Source: Adineta vaga
Taxonomy: Eukaryota > Animalia > Rotifera
Assembly (NCBI GenBank): GCA_021613535.1
Contig: CP075496.1
Coordinates: forward strand, 8,556,001 to 8,620,000
Length of the DNA stretch: 64,000 nt
Direction of reading: 5' to 3'
In this document: piece by piece, positions 10,153 through 55,517 of the stretch
How the letters are laid out: every line of letters begins with the position of its first letter
How positions within the stretch are numbered: the first letter of the stretch is position 1
Notes under the pieces: generated by a model
Told to the model about the DNA's origin: nothing
Database searches by the model: none
Seen by the model: only the letters and a program-made list of their open reading frames with translations
Position numbers and translations under genes: made by a program

Positions 10153-11280
10153 TTATTGTTGTGTTCCAGTTTTATTAACTCGATTCGATTTCATCAACGT
10201 ACTTAATAATGCATGAGGTTGCTTTATTGCTAATTGTGCTTGTATACGTCTAGGTAGTAATTTCTTTATACTTTTGATGAATATTTTTCGAAATAAATGG
10301 CAAGATATAATTGAAAGATAAAATGATTTAACACTATTTATGTAATATAAATAATTGCTTAATGTAAAAGCAAAAAATATAATCGCCGATTGATCCATAC
10401 TTCGGAAATTATTGCTAGTAGTTGTAAAATATATGTATGTACCAATCCATTGTAATGAAAAGAAACTGGTGACGAATACTTGAGTAATTATCATACCAAT
10501 AAATTGATTTCGAAAACTTTGTTGATTAGCTACACCCATTCCAGCCTATGATAAAAAGAAGTGACATAAACGACCCGAAAAAGAAAATGATACATCATAT
10601 CTATCGTATATACTTACCACACGTCGACGACTTTGACGAATATTTCGATAAGTAAGCAAGACAAATATGAACATCGATATTGGTTGAATCAGACCAATAA
10701 ATATAACATAAAAAATAAATGTGGTTCTTGGTTCAGCTGTTGTACATAAAATACCATATGATGTATTAAAAAGAATAGGAGCATAGAGTGAACAAAGAGC
10801 ACTGCTTATGATCACAAAAATAATGATCCATGGTGTATTCTTAAGTACATTTAATCGCCGCATAGGTGATGCATGACTGGATGTTGCTGCAAATCGATCA
10901 ATAATTGCCATCAATGAAAAATTGATTGATAAATGCGGTAGAAATACCAGCAGAAAATAGTAGATACCACATGTTATTGATGATACAAACCATGCAATAA
11001 TGATCTGATATTTATTAGCAAGATACATTGGTAATAAATTTATTGAGAGATTCATAATATCGATGATTGATCCACAAAGTGAATAGATACAGCAGGTATT
11101 GTAGCGAAGTTCAGCTTGAAGATAAGTAAAAAGATTTCCAATGAATCCCACCAAACCCAAGATAAGAAAAATCAGTGGCAAATAAACAAGACCATTTTCA
11201 ATGATTAGATTTAATTCATCACTAATCGATTTTGATACTTGAAAAATATTGTTCATACCTGTTGTATTGTTTGCTTCCAT
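10153..11280 (-). CDS. Rhodopsin-like 7TM GPCR; intron 10546-10617
   Basis: TM1 GFIGN, TM3 AIIDRF, seven hydrophobic segments; a phase-0 GT-AG intron joins the two track ORFs. Confidence 0.85.
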
Positions 11281-37108: not shown

Positions 37109-38228
37109 ATGAAGACGATTAGTTCTACTCGAACTATTCATCGATGCAGACAAAGAAGAATATATTATATGTTAACATACTTTCGTTGGTCAAAGATACG
37201 TTGGCTTGTTTTAGGAATTTTATTTACGATATTTCTTGTTCAATTTATTCAAACACGTTCTGTAACTTATCCAGTCTATTTTCGAATGTTATTTGGTACA
37301 TATTTTCCAAATATTTTCGGTGTATTTTCTGATGAGAGTGAAACTACTACTATTGCTCCGGAAATTGTTATTGATATGAACGATCGTACACCTTCATATA
37401 AACTCGTACTTCGAGCAGATGATCGAACATATATCGATCCTGATCGTGCACAAGCACAGCTATTGGAGAATTTAAAACTCTATGAAACATGTCAGCATGA
37501 TCCATTAACAACCGTTGTTCATATTGGTCCATTTTTAGGTATAAAACAACACTTGTACATAGTAAACAAAATCTTTTTCATAATTTTATTTAGGAGATTT
37601 TGGTCTTTATGCTGCAGCATGTGGTTGTATTGTATACATATTTGAACCTCAACCAACTCTAATACCTCTCATAAATTCATCAATTCGACATAATGAATTT
37701 TCTACCTATCGTGTTCGTCTTTTCAATAAAGTTGTTAATGATTTACCATCGAATACGAGTGTACAATATCCACCTGGTGATGGTTCACCATCTGCTCTTG
37801 ATGATCCAGCTACAGTAACGACTATTCAATTAGATGATATTGATTGGCCATCACAATCAATTTATCTCTTAAAAATCGATGCTGAAGGATTTGAAATGAA
37901 TGTTTTTCATTCAGCAAAAAATCTCTTTGCTCAAAAACGTGTTCGCCATTTAATTTTCAAATATCATCCATGGTTAATCGATCGAGGCACACAAAAAGAA
38001 CTTTTACCGTATGTAAGTAAAGAATTTAAAGCAAAATTTATCTATTGTCTTTATCGAACGGAAAATATTATCTATGGTCCTTTACGTCCAAGAGATATTC
38101 AATTGTTTTATGATCAACATGTGAATGTAGATTTACCGGCAGATGTTTACGCAGCATTAGATGAAAATGCGAAGAGAGCTACGATTAAATCGCAACGATA
38201 TAATACAAATAAAAATGTGGCTTTTTAA
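37109..38228 (+). CDS. Type II membrane FkbM-family methyltransferase, copy 1; intron 37539-37593
   Basis: Basic tail plus TM plus stem; VVHIGPFLG|DFGLYAAACGC, FEPQP, LKIDAEGFE. Confidence 0.85.
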
Positions 38229-39509
38229 TAGAATATTTTTTACTTTTTTTCCAAATATTTTTGTTGATTATGATGAAATAGATTGATTATAATCGAAACT
38301 ATTTTCTAGCTTATTGTTGAAGTTGAATGGATTAATTTCAAAGACTTCTAAATTTTCGTCATTTTGTAGATATATCGATTACATATATTTACTACTAGTA
38401 TGATGATAATCTCTGAAGTAAAATCATATAGAATACCAATGTGTCTGCATTCTTAATTGTTCTAAAAAAAAGTCATGAATTGCCTTTTATCTGTAACAGT
38501 ATTTTCATGCATGAAAAGTGCATTTTATCAAATAACAGTTCTCTCAAAATTGATCGTATGATGTCAATCTAACAGCAGAGATGAATTGATTCTTACTAAT
38601 GCTATTGACGTCAGTTAGGACTGTTCAGTTAATTTTCTTCTTGAACTTCAATTAGATCAGTTAACAATATGTATATATCAAGAGGCGTTTTACTACAATT
38701 ACATCAATGTTTCCTACTTCGTTAACTATCAATTTTACACATCTGAATTGATGAGTCACCTTCATGATATTTTTTATTAATTGTAGAAATACAACTAAAC
38801 TAATGAAATATATGAGAAGAATCGCTAATAGTATATTTCTATATTGATTTTCATTCCATTTGATCTATCAATTGTATCAAAGCCCATAAACTTGATAGAT
38901 AGATAATACAAACTACATGATCGTATTCTTCATAAAATTATCGCTCTTTGATCTTCGTACGTAATGTATATCTGTGCTTTTCTTTCTCAAAAGAAAAGTT
39001 TTTGACTGGCTTAAATTTTTTATGTTAAAATGAAAAAGAAAAAAAAGTGAAGAATGAAAGTTCATTGAACTATGACGAGTTATTCATATGAAACAAATTT
39101 TGATGTACGCATCTATTGATATAGATAAAATTATTAGATATCAATGTTTAACAAAAGATGCATACCTGACATTATTTTTTGTGATATAAAAAGGAAGTAA
39201 ATATCATTTTCATCGTATTTTTCTTTTGAGTACTTTCACTATTGACAGAGGAAAATATATATCATATTGATCCATGCCAGAGATGTCCCTATCAAATCAA
39301 ACTAAACAGTATGTTGTAACAATTGAACTATTTTGTAATTTCATAAATTATTATTTGTTTTTTTGTTATGATCAATAACTTTTTTTTTCATAATATGTAG
39401 TATATATATATGTAAGCATCAATATAGCGTATCTATCATAATTATTATTGGAAATTTTTAATTGTATTTATCAACACTTTCAAAATCATATTTTATCTTA
39501 TAGATAATC

Positions 39510-40633
39510 ATGACAAATATACTTCAAATTGCCATGCGACCTAGAAAAGTAACCGTTACATTAAGTTCAATAATTTCTAATTTTTCCAAATCTACATGGA
39601 TTGCGACTGTTTCACTATTTCTTATTCTAATTATTGTTCTTTATGATCTTCATTCTTATCCTTTTAAAGAAATGACTCGTTTATTGAACAATTCAAGTTA
39701 TTCCAATTCAATAAATTCGCTTTTCTCACAAGCTGAAAGTCACACAACATCGACGACAACTAGTACAACAAGTGCTTCGGAATTAGTAATAGATGTTTAT
39801 GATCGAACGCCGCCGTATAGAGTAGCAACGAAAAATGGTGAGACACCATATCCTGAAGGATATCGAGTACAAGCAAAACTACTCGATGAATTACGTTTGT
39901 ACGAAATATGTCAACGAGATCCATCGACCATTGTCGTTGACGTTGGTGCTTACTTAGGTATGAGATGCAAACACTTGAAATCAAATTAAATAAATATTCT
40001 TATCTTCTAGGTGATTTTGGTATGTATGCAGCAGCATGTGGTTGTACTGTGTATATGTTTGAAATTCAATCAGATATGATTAGTCTTATTCGTTCTTCTA
40101 TTCAACATAATGCATTTTCAGATTCTCGAATTTTTGTCTATCATAATGCCGTTAGTGATGAACCCAACGGTACAACAGTAACATATGTTCCTGAAGGTAG
40201 TGCAACAAAGATTTCAGATGGTATTTCTTCTGTACAAACGATTCGATTAGATGATATAGTATGGACATCATCTTCAATTTACATATTAAAAGTTGATGTC
40301 GAAGGATTTGAATTGAATGTTCTTCGTTCGGCAAAAAGTCTCTTTGCTAAAAGACGTATTCGTCATTTAATTTTCAAATATACACCTTGGTGGACTGATC
40401 GAGCTCCACAACAAACTCTATTACCGTTTGTGAAAAGAGAATTAAGAGCAAAATTTATCTATACTCTTAATCCAACGGAGAATGTTATTTATGGTCCATT
40501 ATCTCCGAAGGATGTGAACAATTTATATGATCAATATATGAAATCTCGTTTGCAAACATATATCTATGCTACATTCGATCCAAAATCTGTACGAACATCA
40601 ATAAAATCACAACAATTTGTCGAGCATAAGTAA
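39510..40633 (+). CDS. Type II membrane FkbM-family methyltransferase, copy 2; intron 39958-40010
   Basis: TM plus Thr-rich stem; VVDVGAYLG|DFGMYAAACGC, FEIQ, TIRLDD, LKVDVEGFE. Confidence 0.9.
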
Positions 40634-41418
40634 GGTGTTAAATAAATATTTAGGTAGTTCTTTAGACTTAATTTTTTATTACAATGTAAATATTAATTTA
40701 CTAATAAATTAAGATCTTAGAATCGAGAATATTTACAAACATCATTGTACAGTATTAAAATACATTTCGAAACGATTTTAATATTCCACAAAAATCTGGA
40801 ATATTAGATCAACCTGAAGAGAAATCAGTGATAAACACGATCAATCATAACATTAGGATAGTATGATCAGATTGTCTTGTTTTCAATTTTTTGATAAGCA
40901 AACTTCGTAAAGAAAGAAAATACTGAATAAAAATTGTTTTCTTCCGCAGACACAAGGAAATAAGTTAACAAGAATGTTCGTTGAACCATAACAGTCGGTA
41001 CATATATAACTAATTTTTTGACGTTTGTATATCGATATATGCATTGAAGAAATTACATTCAATATCAATGCTAACGAATGAGACAACCTTCAATGTATTT
41101 TATTCGCGGGAAAAAACACACATCCAATCGAACATTCTTTTGCTCGTCATACTATTTGCATCTTTCTTTTTACTCCGATTGATATGAGCATGTCATAAGG
41201 CATATCGTTCTGATCGAACAAATAAATGTGAATTTTATAATCGAAATGAGACAATCTTAATGGTCTCATTAGAACACTTTTGTGTTGATTTTTGAAAATT
41301 TTTTCTCGATATCTTTCGTTGTTTATCAACTATTTGAATAGCTTTTTGAAAAAATATATCAATCGACTGAGATTTTGAAATACTCATTATAATTTATCGT
41401 TTAGTTAGAGAATTCATC

Positions 41419-42515
41419 ATGGCAAAATTCAATACAATTATGAATAAAATGAAACAATTCAAATCGTATCATATTTCAACATTACTTCGTTGGACCAGAT
41501 TACGTTGGTATATTCTGATCTTTATCTCATACATATTGCTCGTTTATATTCATCCTTTTCGTTCCTTATCACCAACACGCATTCCTCAACTATGGAGTGA
41601 ATCACATTATTCAAAATATATGAATTTCCTTTTTGAAAATCCTGCACCAGTGACCAATCCTCCGGATATTTTTGTTGATATGAATGAACGCAAACCGTCT
41701 TTTAAACTGGCTATGAGATCCGATGATCGACCATTTCTAAGTGTCGATCGAGCACAATCAAAATTATTAGAAAGACTACGTCTATATGAAACATGTCAAC
41801 GTGATTCATCAACGATTGTTGTTGATGTTGGTGCTTACCTAGGTAGGAGAAAAATAACAATTCAATAAAAGATTATGTCTTTTTCTTAGGTGAATTTGGT
41901 CTCTATGCAGCAGCATGTGGATGTACCGTTTATCTATTTGAAGCTCAACCAGATATGATTAAACTTCTTCATTCATCTATCAAACAGAATATATTTCCAA
42001 CAACTCGAGTACATGTATATCATAATGTTGTCACGAATTTACCTTCAAATACTAATGTTAGTTTTCCACCTGGTGATGGTTCGGTGGCAATGGTTGATAA
42101 TCCAGTTACAGTACGAACTATTCGATTAGATGATGTTCAATGGCCATCGCCATCAATTTTTATGCTTCGAATTGATGTTGATGGCTCTGAATTCAATGTT
42201 CTTCGTTCAGCAAAGAAATTATTTACTCAAAAACGTATACAACATCTACTTTTCACATATACACCATGGTTATCTGAGAGAAGTTCACAAAAAGAACTTC
42301 TACCAAATATTAAAAATGACTTTAAAGCAAAATTTGTCTATAGTCTATTTCGAACGGATGATAATATCTATGGACCACTTCTACCCAGACATTTAACGAA
42401 TTTCTATGATCAAATATTAAATTTAAATATACCAGCTGAAGTCTATGCTGTTTTTGATGACAAAATATCGCAATCAACAATCAAAGCGAAACGTTATCAT
42501 CAATTTAAATCTTAA
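41419..42515 (+). CDS. Type II membrane FkbM-family methyltransferase, copy 3; intron 41843-41889
   Basis: VVDVGAYLG|EFGLYAAACGC, FEAQP, TIRLDD, LRIDVDGSE. Confidence 0.87.
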
Positions 42516-43591
42516 GTGTTATATTTGTTTCATCAAAGTATTATTAGTTTTTCTTTCGAAGATCGTATGGTACGAATTCTAAATTCAATTTTGTTTTCAA
42601 ATTAAGTATGCTAAACACTGTCTAGAATATAAACTGAATCGATCGAGCATTATTATCAGATGATAAAGTAAAATTCTATTAGAATAGTAAAACAATGCAT
42701 CTTTCGTACTCTACTTTCCTTTTCATCATCAGTATGTTCAAAATAATAAACATTATATTAGTAATTTTCATCAAACATCTTACACAATTGGTTGATTATA
42801 TTATCAATTTGTTCTAATTATGTAATATTTACAATCGGTATTTTCTCTCGATCATGCACGTATGAAAGTTTTCTAAAGTCTTTCTCTGATTTTTTCAATA
42901 CTATGTTAAAAGATCTTTATCTACTATCAGTAATATAAACATAAATATTCATATAAAAAAATAATTGAGGAGAAGATGTTGTTGTTTTTCTGTTGGATTC
43001 GATTTCAATTTCACACATCTGAAATAAATGATCATTTTGATAGGTTTTGTTAATTATAAAATATAACTGAGTCAATGAAGTATATAGAATATATCAATAC
43101 AAAATATATAACAGGATGCATTGAATTTGATATCGATAATTTACTGTCATTTGAGTTGCAATAATCTATAGTGATGTGTTTTGTCTTATTATCGAATGAC
43201 TTTCAATAGATAGTAATGCTCAAAGGTTATGAATAGGATGTTAACGAGTGAAAAAAAAAGCATAGGTTACATCATGTTATGTTTTAATGTTCGATTCAAG
43301 CAATGTTAGTTACATAATCGGCTATGATTATGAACATTTTAATTGAAGTTCATTCTCATTTTTAATGCGTTATATAGATCATTTTTATGTCAACAAAAAT
43401 ATCTAGACTGAATTTATGATATTCTACATTCGTAAAGATATTGCTCAGTAACGAACGACAAAACATTTTCATGTTTATCTTTCATGTGTTTCTATTGCAT
43501 TGCAATTTACATTTAAACAAATTATTTACGATCTTTATATATTTGTAGATATATTTATACTTAATTTCAATAATTTTATTAAATCAATGTT

Positions 43592-44736
43592 ATGGAGAAT
43601 ATCAATAGTTCACAATTTCACAACTTGTTTCCTTCTTTGAAACATCGTTACTGTGCAAAACCATACTTATTTCTTTTATTCATTATATTCGCTACATTTA
43701 TTCTTATGTTTCATCAGATACAATATTTTTCATTCAGAATTCCCTTCCAAATTATGTGGATTAACTCTACTCACTCAGATCGTATAAAATCCACTTTTCC
43801 TCAAAGCACAACAACAACAACAACAACATCTTTACCTCTTAACACGCCAAAATCTTCTGAAATCGTAATAGAAATGGATAATCGTATACCAACATATAAA
43901 CTTGCTACTCAATCTGGTAATAAACCATATGCTGATGGTGATCGAGCACAAGCCAAAGTACTAGAGGAAATACATCTTTATGAAACGTGTCAACGAGATC
44001 CATCGACAATTGTTGTCGATGTTGGTGCTTTTCTTGGTATTTAAAAAGAAATCTATTCTACAAATCAAATTCAAACGAAAATATGTTTATGTTTTGTTAT
44101 TTAGGAGATTTTGGCCTTTATGCTGCAGCTTGTGGTTGCACTGTGTATATATTTGAAATCCAACCAGATATGGTGACTTTGATTCGTTCATCAATCAATC
44201 ATAATTCATTTTCATCATCTCGTGTTCATCTTTATCATAATGCAGTTAGTGATTTACCAGCAGGATCGACCGTGAAATTCATGCCAGGTGATGGTTCGAC
44301 AGCCGCTTCAGGTGGTAATGTTTCTGTGGAAACTATGCGTCTAGATGATATACCTTGGTCATCAAATTTCATTTATATGCTCAAAATCGATGTCGAAGGA
44401 TTTGAATTAAATGTTCTTCGTTCGGCAAAGAATCTGTTTGCTGAAAAACGCATTCGCCATTTAATTTTCGAATATACACCTTGGTGGACTGATCGTGCTC
44501 CACAACAAACTCTATTACCATATGTTCAAAATGAATTAAAAGCAAAATTTCTCTATGCACTGCATCGAACTGAGAGCATTATTTATGGACCTTTGCGTGT
44601 CAATGAATTAAAAACGTTTTACAGGACACATTTAAATGCACATCTTCAAACAGATATCTATGCAATATTTGATGATAATGCAACAAAAACGTCGATTAAA
44701 TCAAAACCATACAGTCAGGGTAGAAGAGTAGCTTGA
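43592..44736 (+). CDS. Type II membrane FkbM-family methyltransferase, copy 4; intron 44037-44104
   Basis: VVDVGAFLG|DFGLYAAACGC, FEIQP, LKIDVEGFELNVL, LIFEY; all FkbM consensus motifs are intact. Confidence 0.92.
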
Positions 44737-45867
44737 AACTGAATAATTGTTCAAATTTATTTTCACAACTTCGTATTCTTTTTCGTGAGATTTTTAAGAA
44801 ATCTGATTTTTTGAGAAAAAAACGGATCGATCTATCACTATGTTTATCATTTTGTTTTTCAATAACACGGGAAAATCGATAAAAAAATAAGTGCATTTTT
44901 ATCTCTTCATATCTTTTCGATCAGGTATGCTTATGTCATGAAAAAGTAGAAAAACGTGGACATATTCACGAAAAGCATACCTGCTCGTACAGAATAGTTT
45001 AACTTCGTCCGGATACGGTTTAATCAGATATGTCATGGTTATTATTACACAGATGAAAATATATACAAACTACCTGATGATGACAAATGAAACGGCTGCT
45101 TCTTAAAATTTTCAAAGTATTTGATATCAAAAACTAATTTAGTATTATTCGACAACATAGTGATATTTGTGTGAAAATTCGTGTTAAACGCTTTTTTCGA
45201 AATAAATCATATAATAAATGTCTTTCGATGAAATTATCACTTGCATTCATTCTAAAATTCATAGATATTTCACCATAAATCAAGTTACTTTTCATCATAT
45301 TTTCTAATAAGTTCAATGAGTTAATATTTTCTTAGAGGTGCAATTTTTATCCTTGCTAAATAAATGAACAAAAAAAGAAAAAGAGAATAGCAAATTTATT
45401 CGACCAGAACCAATTCATTAACAAGAATGCATACACCTATAATCGACAGATGGAAACTTATATTTTATAGTATGTACCGTAACGTATGCACTACTAAGTT
45501 TATAGTGAAGAAGAAAAAACCATACGTAGTGTTCCTTGCATATTTTTTTAGTTACTCTCTCGACGTGTCAATACAATGAATTAAACATATACATGATCAA
45601 AATCTATTGCAGGTATTAATCATATTTGATGTTTACAAAACAGTATATGCAGTTATTTTTTCTCAGTGGTTAGCATATTCTACCAACCAGATTTAAAAAA
45701 AAAGTTTATTAATTGATCAACAGCATCTTTTCGTTCGACGGATAAAATCAAATAAGAAAACATGCGGAATCAGCGAATGCAACATGTAATTGAGTATTCA
45801 ATCATAAAGAATATAAACTAGTTCGAAAATATTTATCTTTTCAATTGAATTTTCCTTCCAGATTACC

Positions 45868-46990
45868 ATGTCATATATCAAAAAACAAAAGAATACCTAT
45901 GGGATATCAGGTTTACAATGTATAGCAACATTCTGTCGTACATCGAAACCGAATTGGTGTATTTTAACAGCAACTTTATGTACTTTTGTTCTTCTCTTTC
46001 ATCATGCACATTACTTGTCTTATAGTAAATTGTCTGAAGCATTCTCTAATGAAGACGATTCTAATTCGGTTATGGCAGACGGTAATGTTGAAAATGAACC
46101 AATACAGACAGAAGAAGTCAACACAAATGAAACAGTAATCGAAATGAGTGATCGAGTGCCATCATTCGAACTTGCGACAAAAAAAGGAGATAGACCATCT
46201 TCAGAAAGCGATCGTGCATATGGAAAATTACTCGATGAATTACACCTTCAAGATGTATGTCAACAAGATCCAACAACGATTGTTGTTGATGTTGGTGCGG
46301 GTTTAGGTAAAAGAATGCAAGATTTATGTACACATTTCCAATAAGAAAGAAAATCTTCTTTTAGGAGAATTTGGTCTTTATGCAGCAGCATGTGGTTGTA
46401 CTGTTTATATGTTTGAAGTTCGAACAGATCTAGTTACTCTCATTAAATCATCCATAAAACATAATTCATTCACGTCACCTCCTGTTGATGTTTTTCAGAA
46501 AGCTGTTAGTGATGTACCAACGGATAGTACTATCGATTATTCACCTCCGGAGGGTGAAGGAGACAATACTGACACTTTTACTACAGTACAGACGATTCGA
46601 TTAGATGATGTCTCATGGTCGTCCTTATCAATCTATATACTTAAAATTGATACACCTGGATCAGAATTAAATGTTCTCCGTTCCGCAAAAACTCTTTTCA
46701 ATCAAAAACGTATTCGATATTTATTTTTCGACTATAGTCCATGGTTAGGTGATCCAGAATTACAAAAAAGCATCTTATCATATGTAAGACGAGATGCAAA
46801 AGCGAAATTTATATATAATATCTATCGAAAGGATGAGAAAATTTATGGACCTCTAGTACCAATGCATTTTCCGACACTTTATGATCGAATGGTGGAATCG
46901 CGTACGAATACAAGTATATATGCTGTTTTTGATAACAGAGTAACGAGATCATCCATTAAATCTGAACCATTTCCAATCAATAATCGTTAA
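45868..46990 (+). CDS. Type II membrane FkbM-family methyltransferase, copy 5; intron 46307-46364
   Basis: VVDVGAGLG|EFGLYAAACGC, TIRLDD, LKIDTPGSE; acidic stem. Confidence 0.85.
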
Positions 46991-47140: not shown

Positions 47141-48640
47141 TCAAAATGATTGTTTCGGTAATGTAATTGTCATGTGTTCTGTTGTATCATCGAAGTGAAC
47201 AGACTTACGTTTGATCAAATTGTATAATAACCAACGATTTTTTTGTAAACGTAATGCTGTAGTAAAATTAATACCGTGTAAATTTTGTTGTTGTGAATCA
47301 CATCCCATTTGAATTAATAATTCAACAATACGATATCGACGACCTGATACTTTTAGACAAGTGAAAAGCAGTAAATTATTGCCATCTTTATCTAATTGAT
47401 AAATTGATGATGGAGAAGATTTGATGAGTTTTTCAATCAATTGCCGTTCTTTTTTTTTCAATAATAGAAATATCAATTCGTCATTAATTAACCATTTTTC
47501 CCATGGTTTTTTATCGATCATTTGATGAAATAATCGTCTTCTCCATTGATTTTCTAACAACATGTGGACAATATGTTTTGAACTATCAAAAAAATCTTGA
47601 AAAAAATGATTATTATGATAAATAAGTAAGATAATATCGTATCGATTGTTGATGATTAAACTATCAAGAATACGTTTAAATCGATCAGTTAAATCTACAT
47701 TGATTAGTTTAATTCGTACTAATGATCTGTATTCATCTAAAAATATCTTTAAAATTTCTAATTGTGTTGTATAAAGAATAATTTGATTCGATTTGATTCG
47801 TCGTTGGTTCGAAAGAATTTCTAAGATAATTAAAATCATTTTCTGTAACCAAATCTCATCATCTGACTCATATTTCTGACATTGTGTTGCGAAAAGAATT
47901 AATTCAATCAATGCATGATAGTTTTGTTCATATATGAAATTTGTACGATAAATTAAATAGACAAGATATTCATAGATACTAAATCGATGACCACCACCAT
48001 AACACGGATATTTCAAAAGAGAAGGATTGGATATGAATAAAGTTTGTAACATTTTCGAAGTTAAATTTGATGAAGACAAGACAAGTTCACAAAAGTCATC
48101 AGCAAAATAGAATCCTGCTTGTTCATGTTCATTATATTCCAAAGATGCACCTTTTATGTAAACAAGATATTCGATTTGTTTAAGAATCGATTTTTCAAAT
48201 GGTTTTTCGAATGTTTTCTTTAATTCTAGATCATTGAGCAACATATCCTCATGAGAAAGATATAAACGAATAGATTTGTAATACGAAAGTTTTTCTTTGA
48301 CTTTTGATTTCATTTGAAAATATTGTTCTTGTAAATGAAACTGAATTAATGATTGAAAACATTGTTTTAAAGTCGAATTTTTCGTTGTTTGATTTACAGG
48401 TAATAATTGTTGAGTGATTCTTTCAAATAGAACTGAATTAGAATAACGATGAAAATTTTTGTCATGTTTTTTAATATTTAAAAATTTCGGTAATAAATGT
48501 AAATGTTTATCCAGAAGAATACTATTTAAACGTTGATTTAAACCGAGAAAGGTGTGAAATAGAAAATATATTTCATTGACATATTTGAATATAATGAGAA
48601 TAATTTCATCGGGTAATGTTTCAAATGTCGATACAAACAT
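47141..48640 (-). CDS. F-box-like protein with C-terminal ankyrin repeat(s)
   Basis: N-terminal FETLPDEIILIIFKY; C-terminal DKDGNNLLLFTC...IVELLIQMGCD...NLHG. Confidence 0.75.
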   Translation of the reverse strand: MFVSTFETLPDEIILIIFKYVNEIYFLFHTFLGLNQRLNSILLDKHLHLLPKFLNIKKHDKNFHRYSNSVLFERITQQLLPVNQTTKNSTLKQCFQSLIQFHLQEQYFQMKSKVKEKLSYYKSIRLYLSHEDMLLNDLELKKTFEKPFEKSILKQIEYLVYIKGASLEYNEHEQAGFYFADDFCELVLSSSNLTSKMLQTLFISNPSLLKYPCYGGGHRFSIYEYLVYLIYRTNFIYEQNYHALIELILFATQCQKYESDDEIWLQKMILIILEILSNQRRIKSNQIILYTTQLEILKIFLDEYRSLVRIKLINVDLTDRFKRILDSLIINNRYDIILLIYHNNHFFQDFFDSSKHIVHMLLENQWRRRLFHQMIDKKPWEKWLINDELIFLLLKKKERQLIEKLIKSSPSSIYQLDKDGNNLLLFTCLKVSGRRYRIVELLIQMGCDSQQQNLHGINFTTALRLQKNRWLLYNLIKRKSVHFDDTTEHMTITLPKQSF

Positions 48641-49167
48641 TTTCAATATTTATACTGTCAATATACACTTATTTTTTGACCTTAAAATGGTACATATTTA
48701 TGCGCACCTGTATTCGATCAGATAAAACCAATCGTTTTCTTTTTTATGATGCGACACAATTATAGTTGACAGCACTTGAATGATATGATGTGAGAAAGAG
48801 ATTGTATCGATTAACAAAGATTGAAATTAACAAAACAAATTTCAATGAAAAGTCCAAATCGATAAAGGTTCATTTCGTCTAATTAGATAGATCATTTATT
48901 TTGCGTGTAGGATGACATCTGTCTCAAGGAAAAGAAATTAATAGAAGTGAACAATAAATATTTGTCCTTCGTAAAAACTTGTAGTTTTTTATTCCGGCTC
49001 TTCAATAATGATAGAACTCGAACGGTATATTTAAGATTTTCGAATTGATAACAAGTTTTATGAGGATATCAGTTCATGTTATCTTCATCATAAAACATCA
49101 ATAAAAGAAACACCTTTATAAATTAGAGTCTAATTTGAATAACACTTTACAACTTAGATTCATTAAG

Positions 49168-54061: not shown

Positions 54062-55517
54062 ATGAAAAGAATGAGTGACGATATATGTCGTAAGTTGAAA
54101 AAGAATTATTAAGATTTAGATTAAATCTTTGCTATTTCCTATAGAAGAAATTCTGTTGTCTAAAACTCTTAAAACTGATTCATTTACATCATTAAAATTA
54201 TCTCCAAATGACTGGATAATATCTTCAAGTAATGCCATTAGTTGCATTTACTTTTATAATATTCAACAATGGCCATTATACAAAAAACAAAACAACAATA
54301 ATATCTTTATGAATGTTGAAAAATTGATTTCAAGTTTACAAATCTTATTGAAACATTATCCTTTACTAACCGGTACATTCAAAATATTCGATACAGATAA
54401 CAAAGTATCCCTTGAAAATGACGAGAATAATGGTGGCATTGTATTTGTTTCAACATGCGTCAATATTCCAATCAAGGAACTGCCAATATCAATTGATCAA
54501 TATACTAATACTAAGAAAATACCAGAATCATTACAATTGATTAATTCATTCACTGCAAATGTTCCATTTCATGTTCGTCATACTCGATTTTCATGCGGTA
54601 GTGTTGCACTTGGTATATCATTGAATCATCAAGTTGCTGATGCTCACTCCTATTTTCAACTGATTGATGATTGGAGACAAATTTATCAAAATTCGAATTA
54701 TCAATCGAATGTTTGTCATCAAAGATCACTTCTTCAGCCAACTCTCGCAGAAATTCAACAATTAAAAAATTCAAATCCAAATTTTAACAATCGAAAAAGT
54801 CTTTCATTTAAACACGAAGAACTATCTTCTCTTCCGATGCTACCAAAAGAAACTATTATCAAAATATTTCGATTCTCAAATGATGAATTACAACGAATGA
54901 AGTCTGATGCTGTAATTCATTTATCATCCGATATTGATTATCTATCTACATTTGAAGTCCTGACTGCACATCTTTATCGACATGTAATGTTTGCTCGTCA
55001 TCATTCAACATCATCAATACAAACAAAACTTTATATTTCAACTAATATTCGTCCACGTTTGATTCAACCATCCATTCCTAATACTTATTTCGGTAATGCA
55101 ATTATGCTTTCGTATTCTGAAATGATGATGCGAGATTTATTGAATTTAAATTCTCTTAGTTTAATTGCTAGTCAAGTACATAAATCAATTGAAGAGAATA
55201 CAAGTAATGATATTCGAACGACCTTAGCATGGATTAGTTGTCAAGATGATAAGATGAAAATAACACCAACTTGGAATTTAGATACAACAGATTTTACAAT
55301 TTCAGCTTGGAATAAAATGGGAATGTATGCAAAATCAGAATTTGAAATTGATGTTCCTGCATGTCGAATTATACTTCCACAGAATACGAATTTTAATGGT
55401 GCAGCAACTTTATTTTCAACAGAAGATAATGATGGAAGTATTGATGTCTTTTTAGGATTAGAAGTGAATGAAATGAATCAATTAGAAAAAAACTTAGATT
55501 TCAGAAAATATCGTTGA
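54062..55517 (+). CDS. BAHD/Tri101-like CoA-dependent acyltransferase (Transferase family); micro first exon 54062-54089, intron 54090-54144
   Basis: HYPLLTG, TRFSCGSVALGISLNHQVADAHS (HxxxD), LSTFEVLTAHL, NIRPRL...YFGNA; GTAAGT...TAG intron in phase 1. Confidence 0.9.

Follow-up and report, generated by a model that had tools for sequence, protein, structure and literature searches.

What a run of five methyltransferase-like genes does for a bdelloid rotifer, and from where the rotifer obtained it, are the questions raised by a locus on chromosome 4 of Adineta vaga. The locus lies in a stretch of 64,000 nucleotides (nt), hereafter the window, that spans positions 8,556,001-8,620,000 of the chromosome-scale contig C4 in a 100.8 Mb assembly of six contigs. 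In this report, we describe five genes of the FkbM methyltransferase family, g1 to g5, which stand in tandem on the forward (+) strand at window positions 37109-46990. The array would represent an old, selectively maintained set of five paralogous single-pass membrane methyltransferases. We regard its products as candidates for sugar methylation in the secretory pathway, an enzyme class not yet identified in any animal.

Five tandem genes and their models

Each gene consists of two coding exons, and neighboring genes are spaced 785-1281 nt apart. The first, g1 (37109-38228; 354 residues), has exon 1 at 37109-37538 and exon 2, including the stop codon, at 37594-38228, around an intron of 55 nt (37539-37593). 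In g2 (39510-40633; 356 residues from the first ATG), the exons lie at 39510-39957 and 40011-40633 and the intron (39958-40010) has 53 nt. The exons of g3 (41419-42515; 349 residues) occupy 41419-41842 and 41890-42515 and flank an intron of 47 nt (41843-41889). For g4 (43592-44736; 358 residues from the first ATG), we find exons at 43592-44036 and 44105-44736 and an intron of 68 nt (44037-44104). Finally, g5 (45868-46990; 354 residues) has exons at 45868-46306 and 46365-46990 and an intron of 58 nt (46307-46364). All five introns are GT-AG and phase 1. The original prediction of five co-oriented paralogs was borne out: the gene structures were recovered, and chance is excluded because Adineta ricciae keeps the same five genes with the same introns in the same order. 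A tblastn search of the window revealed no sixth copy or fragment.

The window sequence was searched exon by exon; full-length work used the public spliced proteins P0004 and P0007. Public proteins encoded in the window bear I4U23 locus tags. The A. vaga model P0007 equals g1 exactly, with the same splice junction, and P0004 equals g2 from its second methionine (Met9), except for the last residue, which is N in P0004 and K in the window. Model P0001 corresponds to g4 with the same junction as our model and a truncated N-terminus that starts downstream of the membrane anchor described below. We favor the longer g4 model because residues 5-148 of its exon 1 are conserved in A. ricciae. Models P0001 (A. 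vaga g4) and P0002 look wrong, in that the g4 models begin after the anchor. In A. ricciae, the model at L108:3670-6722 merges the orthologs of g2 and g3 into one product of 687 residues.

Family assignment and predicted fold

Membership of the FkbM family, as first proposed, is upheld by profile matches above curated cut-offs. All five second exons match PF05050 at 36.8-51.2 bits (Pfam cut-off 22.7), and the four second exons tested match TIGR01444 at 40.8-51.3 bits (cut-off 37.7). The subfamily extends past the Pfam core on both sides, with ~45 conserved residues before it and ~70 after. Motif I for the binding of S-adenosylmethionine (SAM), acidic-x-G-x-x-x-G, and the acidic residue after strand 2 are present in g2-g5. 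The columns G138, G142, E159 and D237 show no variation across 45 aligned family sequences.

An AlphaFold2 model of g2, made with the 45-sequence alignment, has a mean predicted local distance difference test score (pLDDT) of 87.3. In the numbering of P0004, residues 19-40 form a helix, 54-77 are disordered (with pLDDT <50 at 54-59 and 64-77) and 83-348 fold into a domain. The top PDB entry in a Foldseek search was the uncharacterized FkbM structure 2py6 (E 1.2e-7). VIA-align superposed the model on 2py6 with a Z of 13.9 and a root-mean-square deviation (rmsd) of 2.8 Å over 174 aligned residues, at 20% identity; these are the best rmsd and identity among its class I methyltransferase matches (Z ~14, g2 residues 79-333). 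No closer structure emerged from a sequence-profile search of the PDB. Judged from the model, the fold is that of a class I (Rossmann-like) SAM-methyltransferase.

Predicted membrane topology

The five first exons begin with a tail of 23-29 residues that contains 3-8 Lys/Arg and 0-1 Asp/Glu. There follows an uncharged hydrophobic stretch of 20-24 residues (Kyte-Doolittle mean 1.4-2.2), the sole hydrophobic segment of each protein. This putative anchor occupies residues 30-49 of g1 (nt 37196-37255), 28-47 of g2 (nt 39591-39650), 30-53 of g3 (nt 41506-41577), 24-43 of g4 (nt 43661-43720) and 30-53 of g5 (nt 45955-46026), where it is the weakest of the five (Kyte-Doolittle 1.39). Beyond it lie low-complexity stems that are Ser/Thr-rich in g1, g2 and g4 (with a poly-Thr run in g4), acidic in g5 and Pro-rich, not Ser/Thr-rich, in g3. 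The type II-like plan that had been described for all five, namely a basic tail, a single hydrophobic anchor, a Ser/Thr/acidic stem and an FkbM domain, is present, with the exception of the stem of g3.

The lengths of the tail and of the hydrophobic stretch would suit a signal peptide less well than an uncleaved signal anchor, and the charge distribution would fit a cytosolic N-terminus. From these features we infer a luminal catalytic domain and a Golgi location. At least 35 PF05050 matches occur in the A. vaga genome, in several membrane-anchored subfamilies; as predicted from sequence, the anchored FkbM architecture is not unusual in this genome. The other anchored subfamilies (for example, C1:15023777, C3:18682938 and C1:14029523) resemble g1-g5 in joining a single N-terminal hydrophobic segment to PF05050, but they lie outside the clade of the window genes, score 40-52 bits against them and are intronless at the site of the shared intron.

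Age of the array

The five genes are 47-62% identical to one another in the catalytic exon and 28-44% identical in exon 1. In A. ricciae, a single contig carries, in order, a CHAP-domain gene, five FkbM genes, a gene for 494 residues on the opposite strand, a GDPD gene, a gene for an EGF protein, a gene for 310 residues, a BAHD-type transferase gene and a G protein-coupled receptor (GPCR) gene. The best match of each window exon falls in order within this locus (L108), and all five introns are kept. Identity in exon 2 is 82% for g1, 71% for g2, 66% for g3, 71% for g4 and 67% for g5, the ortholog of which is P0070. Because A. ricciae has the same genes, order and introns, the array is older than the split of the two Adineta species. 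Further, the g5 pair has two Rotaria proteins as its sister group (Shimodaira-Hasegawa-like approximate likelihood ratio test [SH-aLRT] 91), which suggests that at least part of the duplication is older than the Adineta-Rotaria split. Between A. vaga and A. ricciae, the ratio of nonsynonymous to synonymous substitution rates (dN/dS) is 0.07-0.20 in exon 2 (lowest in g1, at 0.07) and 0.27-0.53 in exon 1; these are pairwise Nei-Gojobori (NG86) estimates with dS near 1, and the values are approximate. As judged by these ratios, every copy is under purifying selection.

The intron offers a second view of this history. In all five genes, it splits, after the first base (phase 1), the codon of the glycine that precedes the acidic residue in G-x-x-L-G-D/E-F-G. 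The original prediction, that the intron predates the amplification, proved conservative: the intron is common not only to g1-g5 and their A. ricciae orthologs, but also to a second array on chromosome 2 and to a third bdelloid subclade. All four genes of the chromosome 2 array (C2:14500804-14508106, L082) have it at the same position and in the same phase. Three of these four copies hardly differ, a sign of recent duplication or gene conversion, in contrast with the old, diverged array in the window. In the third subclade, the models P0297 and P0111 contain in-frame read-through insertions exactly at the intron site. A paralog on chromosome 5 (C5:5849832-5850269, L085) precisely lacks the intron and has an open frame of 337 codons, or 304 residues from the first methionine; no poly-A tract is evident downstream. 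This copy branches beside the chromosome 2 array, inside the intron-bearing clades, and intron loss is therefore the simpler reading.

A further observation concerns the A. ricciae orthologs of g3 and g5 (L108:6017-6100 and 10439-10522). They are identical over the 22 nt that span the junction of exon 1 and intron; at the acceptor junction, one base differs in 24 nt, and both encode G-T-F-G. This likeness may mark a local gene-conversion tract.

Relatives and phylogeny

Where did the subfamily come from? In word-index searches, the only named proteins were those of Adineta and Rotaria and one protein of the green alga Scenedesmus sp. PABB004, HT031_006230 (P0295). No animal other than a rotifer was named among the relatives in these searches or in cluster look-ups, where most matches are unnamed. 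A profile search of 1.84 billion representatives returned 61 proteins at E <=1e-30, which match profile positions ~85-327; among the 30 of these that were looked up, only Rotaria proteins were named. Among named organisms, we met the subfamily in bdelloid rotifers and one green alga only.

Scores against the second exons fall into tiers: 244-373 bits for bdelloid orthologs, 97-168 for Scenedesmus (31-43% identity), 101-155 for unnamed clade members, 65-83 for next-tier unnamed FkbM proteins, 43-65 for bacteria and 40-52 for the other A. vaga FkbM subfamilies. This order holds for each window gene but g5, for which an unnamed clade member scores slightly above Scenedesmus. The array is hence closer to a non-animal homolog than to the other FkbM subfamilies of its own genome. 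Searches of bacteria and archaea (one genome for each of 185,579 species) gave matches at 23-37% identity (51% in one 43-residue fragment) that cover only the core of ~140 residues, and the matches in IMG/VR viral contigs were likewise core-only, at 25-34% identity (41% in one 57-residue fragment).

Trees were built with FastTree (114 rows) and with IQ-TREE under LG+G4 (61 rows, from which the other A. vaga subfamilies, 24 bacterial, 16 tier-3 and seven eukaryote-like rows, P0157, P0163, P0164, P0170, P0178 and others, were left out). In both, g1-g5 group with bdelloid sequences only (support 99), and the 22 bdelloid rows together make up a single clade, also with support 99. Around it is a eukaryote-like clade (98-100), from which bacteria are absent in both trees and the other A. 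vaga FkbM subfamilies are absent as well. By the sequence features of the ESM Atlas, the nearest clusters are eukaryotic (Streptophyta, Bacillariophyta, Rotifera), and by fold the best match (TM 0.68) is to a eukaryotic cluster found most often in Haptophyta.

The unnamed clade members vary in composition, from Ala/Gly/Arg-rich to AT-rich coding. The contig of one of them, P0120 (L001), has a GC content of ~49% and neighboring genes without Pfam families. An N-terminal hydrophobic anchor is present in 20 of the 27 non-rotifer clade members; as the majority of the unnamed environmental relatives likewise carry one, rotifers inherited the anchor and did not add it themselves. Some environmental relatives are fused to an uncharacterized N-terminal domain (P0156 1-275, P0168 345-625, P0171 130-420) with invariant D-x-D, W-x-x-D-Q and D-D-x-H motifs. 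This domain has no Pfam or NCBIfam match at E up to 10, and a profile search of the PDB found only a spurious RNase A. Its AlphaFold2 model (pLDDT 33) is unusable, and the ESM Atlas offers a weak lead to nucleotide-sugar transferases (score 0.88-0.90). In P0168, further unassigned regions lie on either side of the fused domain.

A proposed function and history

These findings raise the possibility of a methylation system in the secretory pathway of the rotifer. In the mechanism that we propose, the anchor would insert with the N-terminus in the cytosol (type II), so that the catalytic domain would reside in the lumen of the Golgi or endoplasmic reticulum. SAM would enter the lumen through MFS_5 (SAMT-1/GoSAMT-type) transporters. 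The family MFS_5 (PF05631) matches several A. vaga loci, with a best E of 1.2e-37, which is supportive only, as the family is widespread. Each paralog would O-methylate a different sugar position or acceptor, be it on N-glycans, O-glycans, glycolipids or a secreted polysaccharide; the divergence among the five conserved paralogs suggests such differences in acceptor specificity. The usual layout of Golgi glycan-modifying enzymes is a type II anchor with a Ser/Thr stem, and characterized bacterial members of the FkbM family include sugar O-methyltransferases. Further, a green-algal FkbM gene stands among glycosylation genes, and a role in glycan methylation has been proposed for it (PMC5082852). 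The MFS_5 family has been linked to the import of SAM into the Golgi (bioRxiv 10.1101/2021.07.06.451061).

As for history, it is probable that an alga-like eukaryote passed the subfamily to the bdelloid stem lineage, in a single event; after entry, one intron would have been gained, and diversification would have followed before the Adineta-Rotaria split. Transfer from such a source is plausible because no other animal is named among the relatives; its direction and its donor are putative. The genes are integrated in the host genome and are no contaminants, with spliceosomal introns, a place between GPCR genes on a chromosome-scale contig and synteny with A. ricciae. The earlier suggestion of a domesticated, possibly horizontally acquired system hence survives in part. 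A horizontal origin is plausible, and the phylogeny sets the bdelloid clade apart from bacteria and from the other A. vaga subfamilies; a bacterial source is not supported, and nesting, and with it transfer, is unproven.

Taken together, the best explanation of the array would be that it encodes anchored, luminal glycan O-methyltransferases of alga-like origin, to which we assign a probability of roughly 0.55. For the glycan acceptor by itself, our estimate is a little over one half. A bolder version is doubtful: that g1-g5 and the paralogs on chromosomes 2 and 5 are the first identified animal Golgi glycan O-methyltransferases, were passed from a green-alga-like donor to the bdelloid ancestor and diversified into an acceptor-specific set that gives surface or secreted glycans a methylated, alga-like coat.

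Several points weigh against the explanation that we prefer. For the orientation of the proteins, we have only hydropathy and the positive-inside rule to go by. The structure search is silent on substrate, with a tie at Z 13-14 among hundreds of class I methyltransferases. The enzyme on which the family was founded, FkbM, has a macrolide as its methyl acceptor, and a glycan acceptor therefore does not follow from family membership. Within the window, the array has no glycosyltransferase or sugar-transporter neighbor, and we found no data on rotifer glycans, including their methylation, in the literature searched. An argument from relatives fused to a glycosyltransferase was dropped, given that the fused domain has no profile match, an unusable model and a weak lead only. 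With regard to origin, names are attached to only about a quarter of the database proteins, which leaves absence from other animals unestablished. The pair of Scenedesmus and P0135 is the sister group of the bdelloids with an SH-aLRT of 88 only. Further, when all non-rotifer members are grouped together, the resulting tree is not rejected by an approximately unbiased (AU) test (p = 0.40), and neither nesting nor, with it, a donor is established.

Alternative explanations

One alternative is vertical descent of the subfamily from an early eukaryote, followed by loss in most animals, with no transfer at all. The AU test is compatible with this account, as it does not reject rotifers outside all other clade members. 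So are the related eukaryotic FkbM clusters in Streptophyta, Bacillariophyta and Haptophyta, which imply that the broader family is widespread in eukaryotes, as well as the host-like base composition, the introns and the stable synteny. However, losses would be needed in every other sampled animal lineage, no non-rotifer animal is named among the relatives and the algal protein is much closer to the array than the other FkbM subfamilies of A. vaga are. Bdelloids are, moreover, rich in foreign genes, many of them bacterial. We hold vertical inheritance to be possible, but the lesser prospect.

A second alternative keeps the architecture and changes the acceptor, which would be a luminal protein, a lipid or some small molecule that is secreted, much as FkbM itself acts on a polyketide. 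Its basis is that the family takes its definition from a macrolide O-methyltransferase, that the window has nothing to tie the array to glycosylation genes and that the fold search does not separate substrates. In addition, the BAHD acyltransferase (PF02458) and the GDPD phosphodiesterase, small-molecule or lipid enzymes, are neighbors of the array and are syntenic in A. ricciae. Against this stand the Golgi-like anchor and stem, the sugar O-methyltransferases among bacterial FkbM members and the green-algal gene among glycosylation genes (PMC5082852). On balance, a non-glycan acceptor seems unlikely.

Are all five copies enzymes? Motif I of g1 (window 37520-37600) reads H-I-G-P, as against D-V-G-A in its paralogs. 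In nearly all of the 45 aligned relatives, this motif has Asp, then V/I, Gly and Ala/Gly/Ser. The A. ricciae ortholog of g1, P0017, also has H-I-G-P. The cofactor site of g1 may be altered, or its role may not be catalytic, and some copies, g1 above all, could be pseudoenzymes without catalytic activity that serve the other copies as partners or regulators. The replacement of the Asp and of the small residue by His and Pro, and its retention in A. ricciae, speak for this idea. Nonetheless, g1 retains the glycines of motif I, the Glu of strand 2 and the other invariant residues, and its catalytic exon is under the strongest purifying selection of the five. We consider inactivity improbable.

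Direct acquisition from bacteria, with anchor and stem added in rotifers, appears very improbable: FkbM is mainly a bacterial family and bdelloids carry many bacterial genes, but the bacterial matches, from one genome per species, are core-only, bacteria lie outside the clade in both trees and the anchor and both extensions are common to non-rotifer, eukaryote-like relatives. A bacterial donor was accordingly rejected, as was a giant-virus donor, for which the IMG/VR matches are core-only.

Neighboring genes

Other genes of the block are also conserved in A. ricciae. Directly upstream of the array is a CHAP-domain gene (PF05257; 36103-36687, +; 194 residues in a single open reading frame [ORF]), with its A. 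ricciae counterpart at L108:710-1294. It resembles a bacterial-type amidase and is likely of foreign origin. Directly downstream, on the reverse (-) strand, lies an ORF of 501 residues with no Pfam family (47141-48646), which corresponds to the 494-residue gene of A. ricciae (L108:11285-12769). Further along, an intronless gene for a BAHD-type acyltransferase (PF02458, E 6e-50; 54129-55517, +; 462 residues) keeps its synteny in A. ricciae (L108:17630-19090). The BAHD family is typical of plants and fungi, and this gene is another foreign-gene candidate in the same block.

Significance and comparison with known systems

O-methylated sugars, which innate-immune lectins target, occur on the glycans of nematodes, mollusks, planarians and algae. 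In the literature that we searched, no glycan methyltransferase has been identified for any animal, and no report on rotifer FkbM proteins was found. The clade described here provides concrete, testable candidates for animal glycan O-methyltransferases. It is also a clean case for asking whether a transfer from a eukaryote to an animal brought a secretory-pathway enzyme together with its membrane anchor. The limits of the case are that the function is wholly inferred, that databases already attach an automatic FkbM-domain label to the rotifer proteins and that A. vaga is not a genetic model.

With the FkbM family at large (PF05050 / TIGR01444; Streptomyces FkbM), the rotifer proteins share the class I fold, motif I and the motif K-I-D-x-x-G. 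The only solved member that we found is 2py6, from Methylobacillus flagellatus. Bacterial FkbM proteins are soluble and, unlike g1-g5, have no anchor or stem; they also lack the conserved flanking extensions that define the rotifer clade (profile positions 85-327). The closest named counterpart is in the same clade as the rotifer genes: Scenedesmus HT031_006230 is 40% identical over 243 residues that include both extensions. The environmental relatives P0135-P0148 and P0120 also belong to this clade, and most have an N-terminal anchor. The full-length ones among these relatives have uninterrupted reading frames that lack the rotifer intron. Neither Scenedesmus nor the environmental relatives are known to have five such genes in tandem, and none of these proteins is characterized.

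Two systems from other eukaryotes come near to what we propose. One is ostta19g00560 of Ostreococcus tauri, on the "viral immunity" chromosome of that alga, a predicted eukaryotic FkbM protein for which glycan methylation was proposed from context (PMC5082852). We liken it to the rotifer genes by description only; its neighbors are glycosyltransferase genes, of which the rotifer array has none beside it. The other is the SAMT-1 (MFS_5) system of Caenorhabditis elegans. As of 2023, the methyltransferases that act on C. elegans N-glycans had yet to be identified (PMC7614267), and therefore no homology to the rotifer genes can be claimed. The proposed logic is nevertheless the same in nematode and rotifer, namely the import of SAM into the Golgi followed by luminal methylation of glycans (bioRxiv 10.1101/2021.07.06.451061; PMC7614267), and A. 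vaga, like the SAMT-1 system, has MFS_5 loci.

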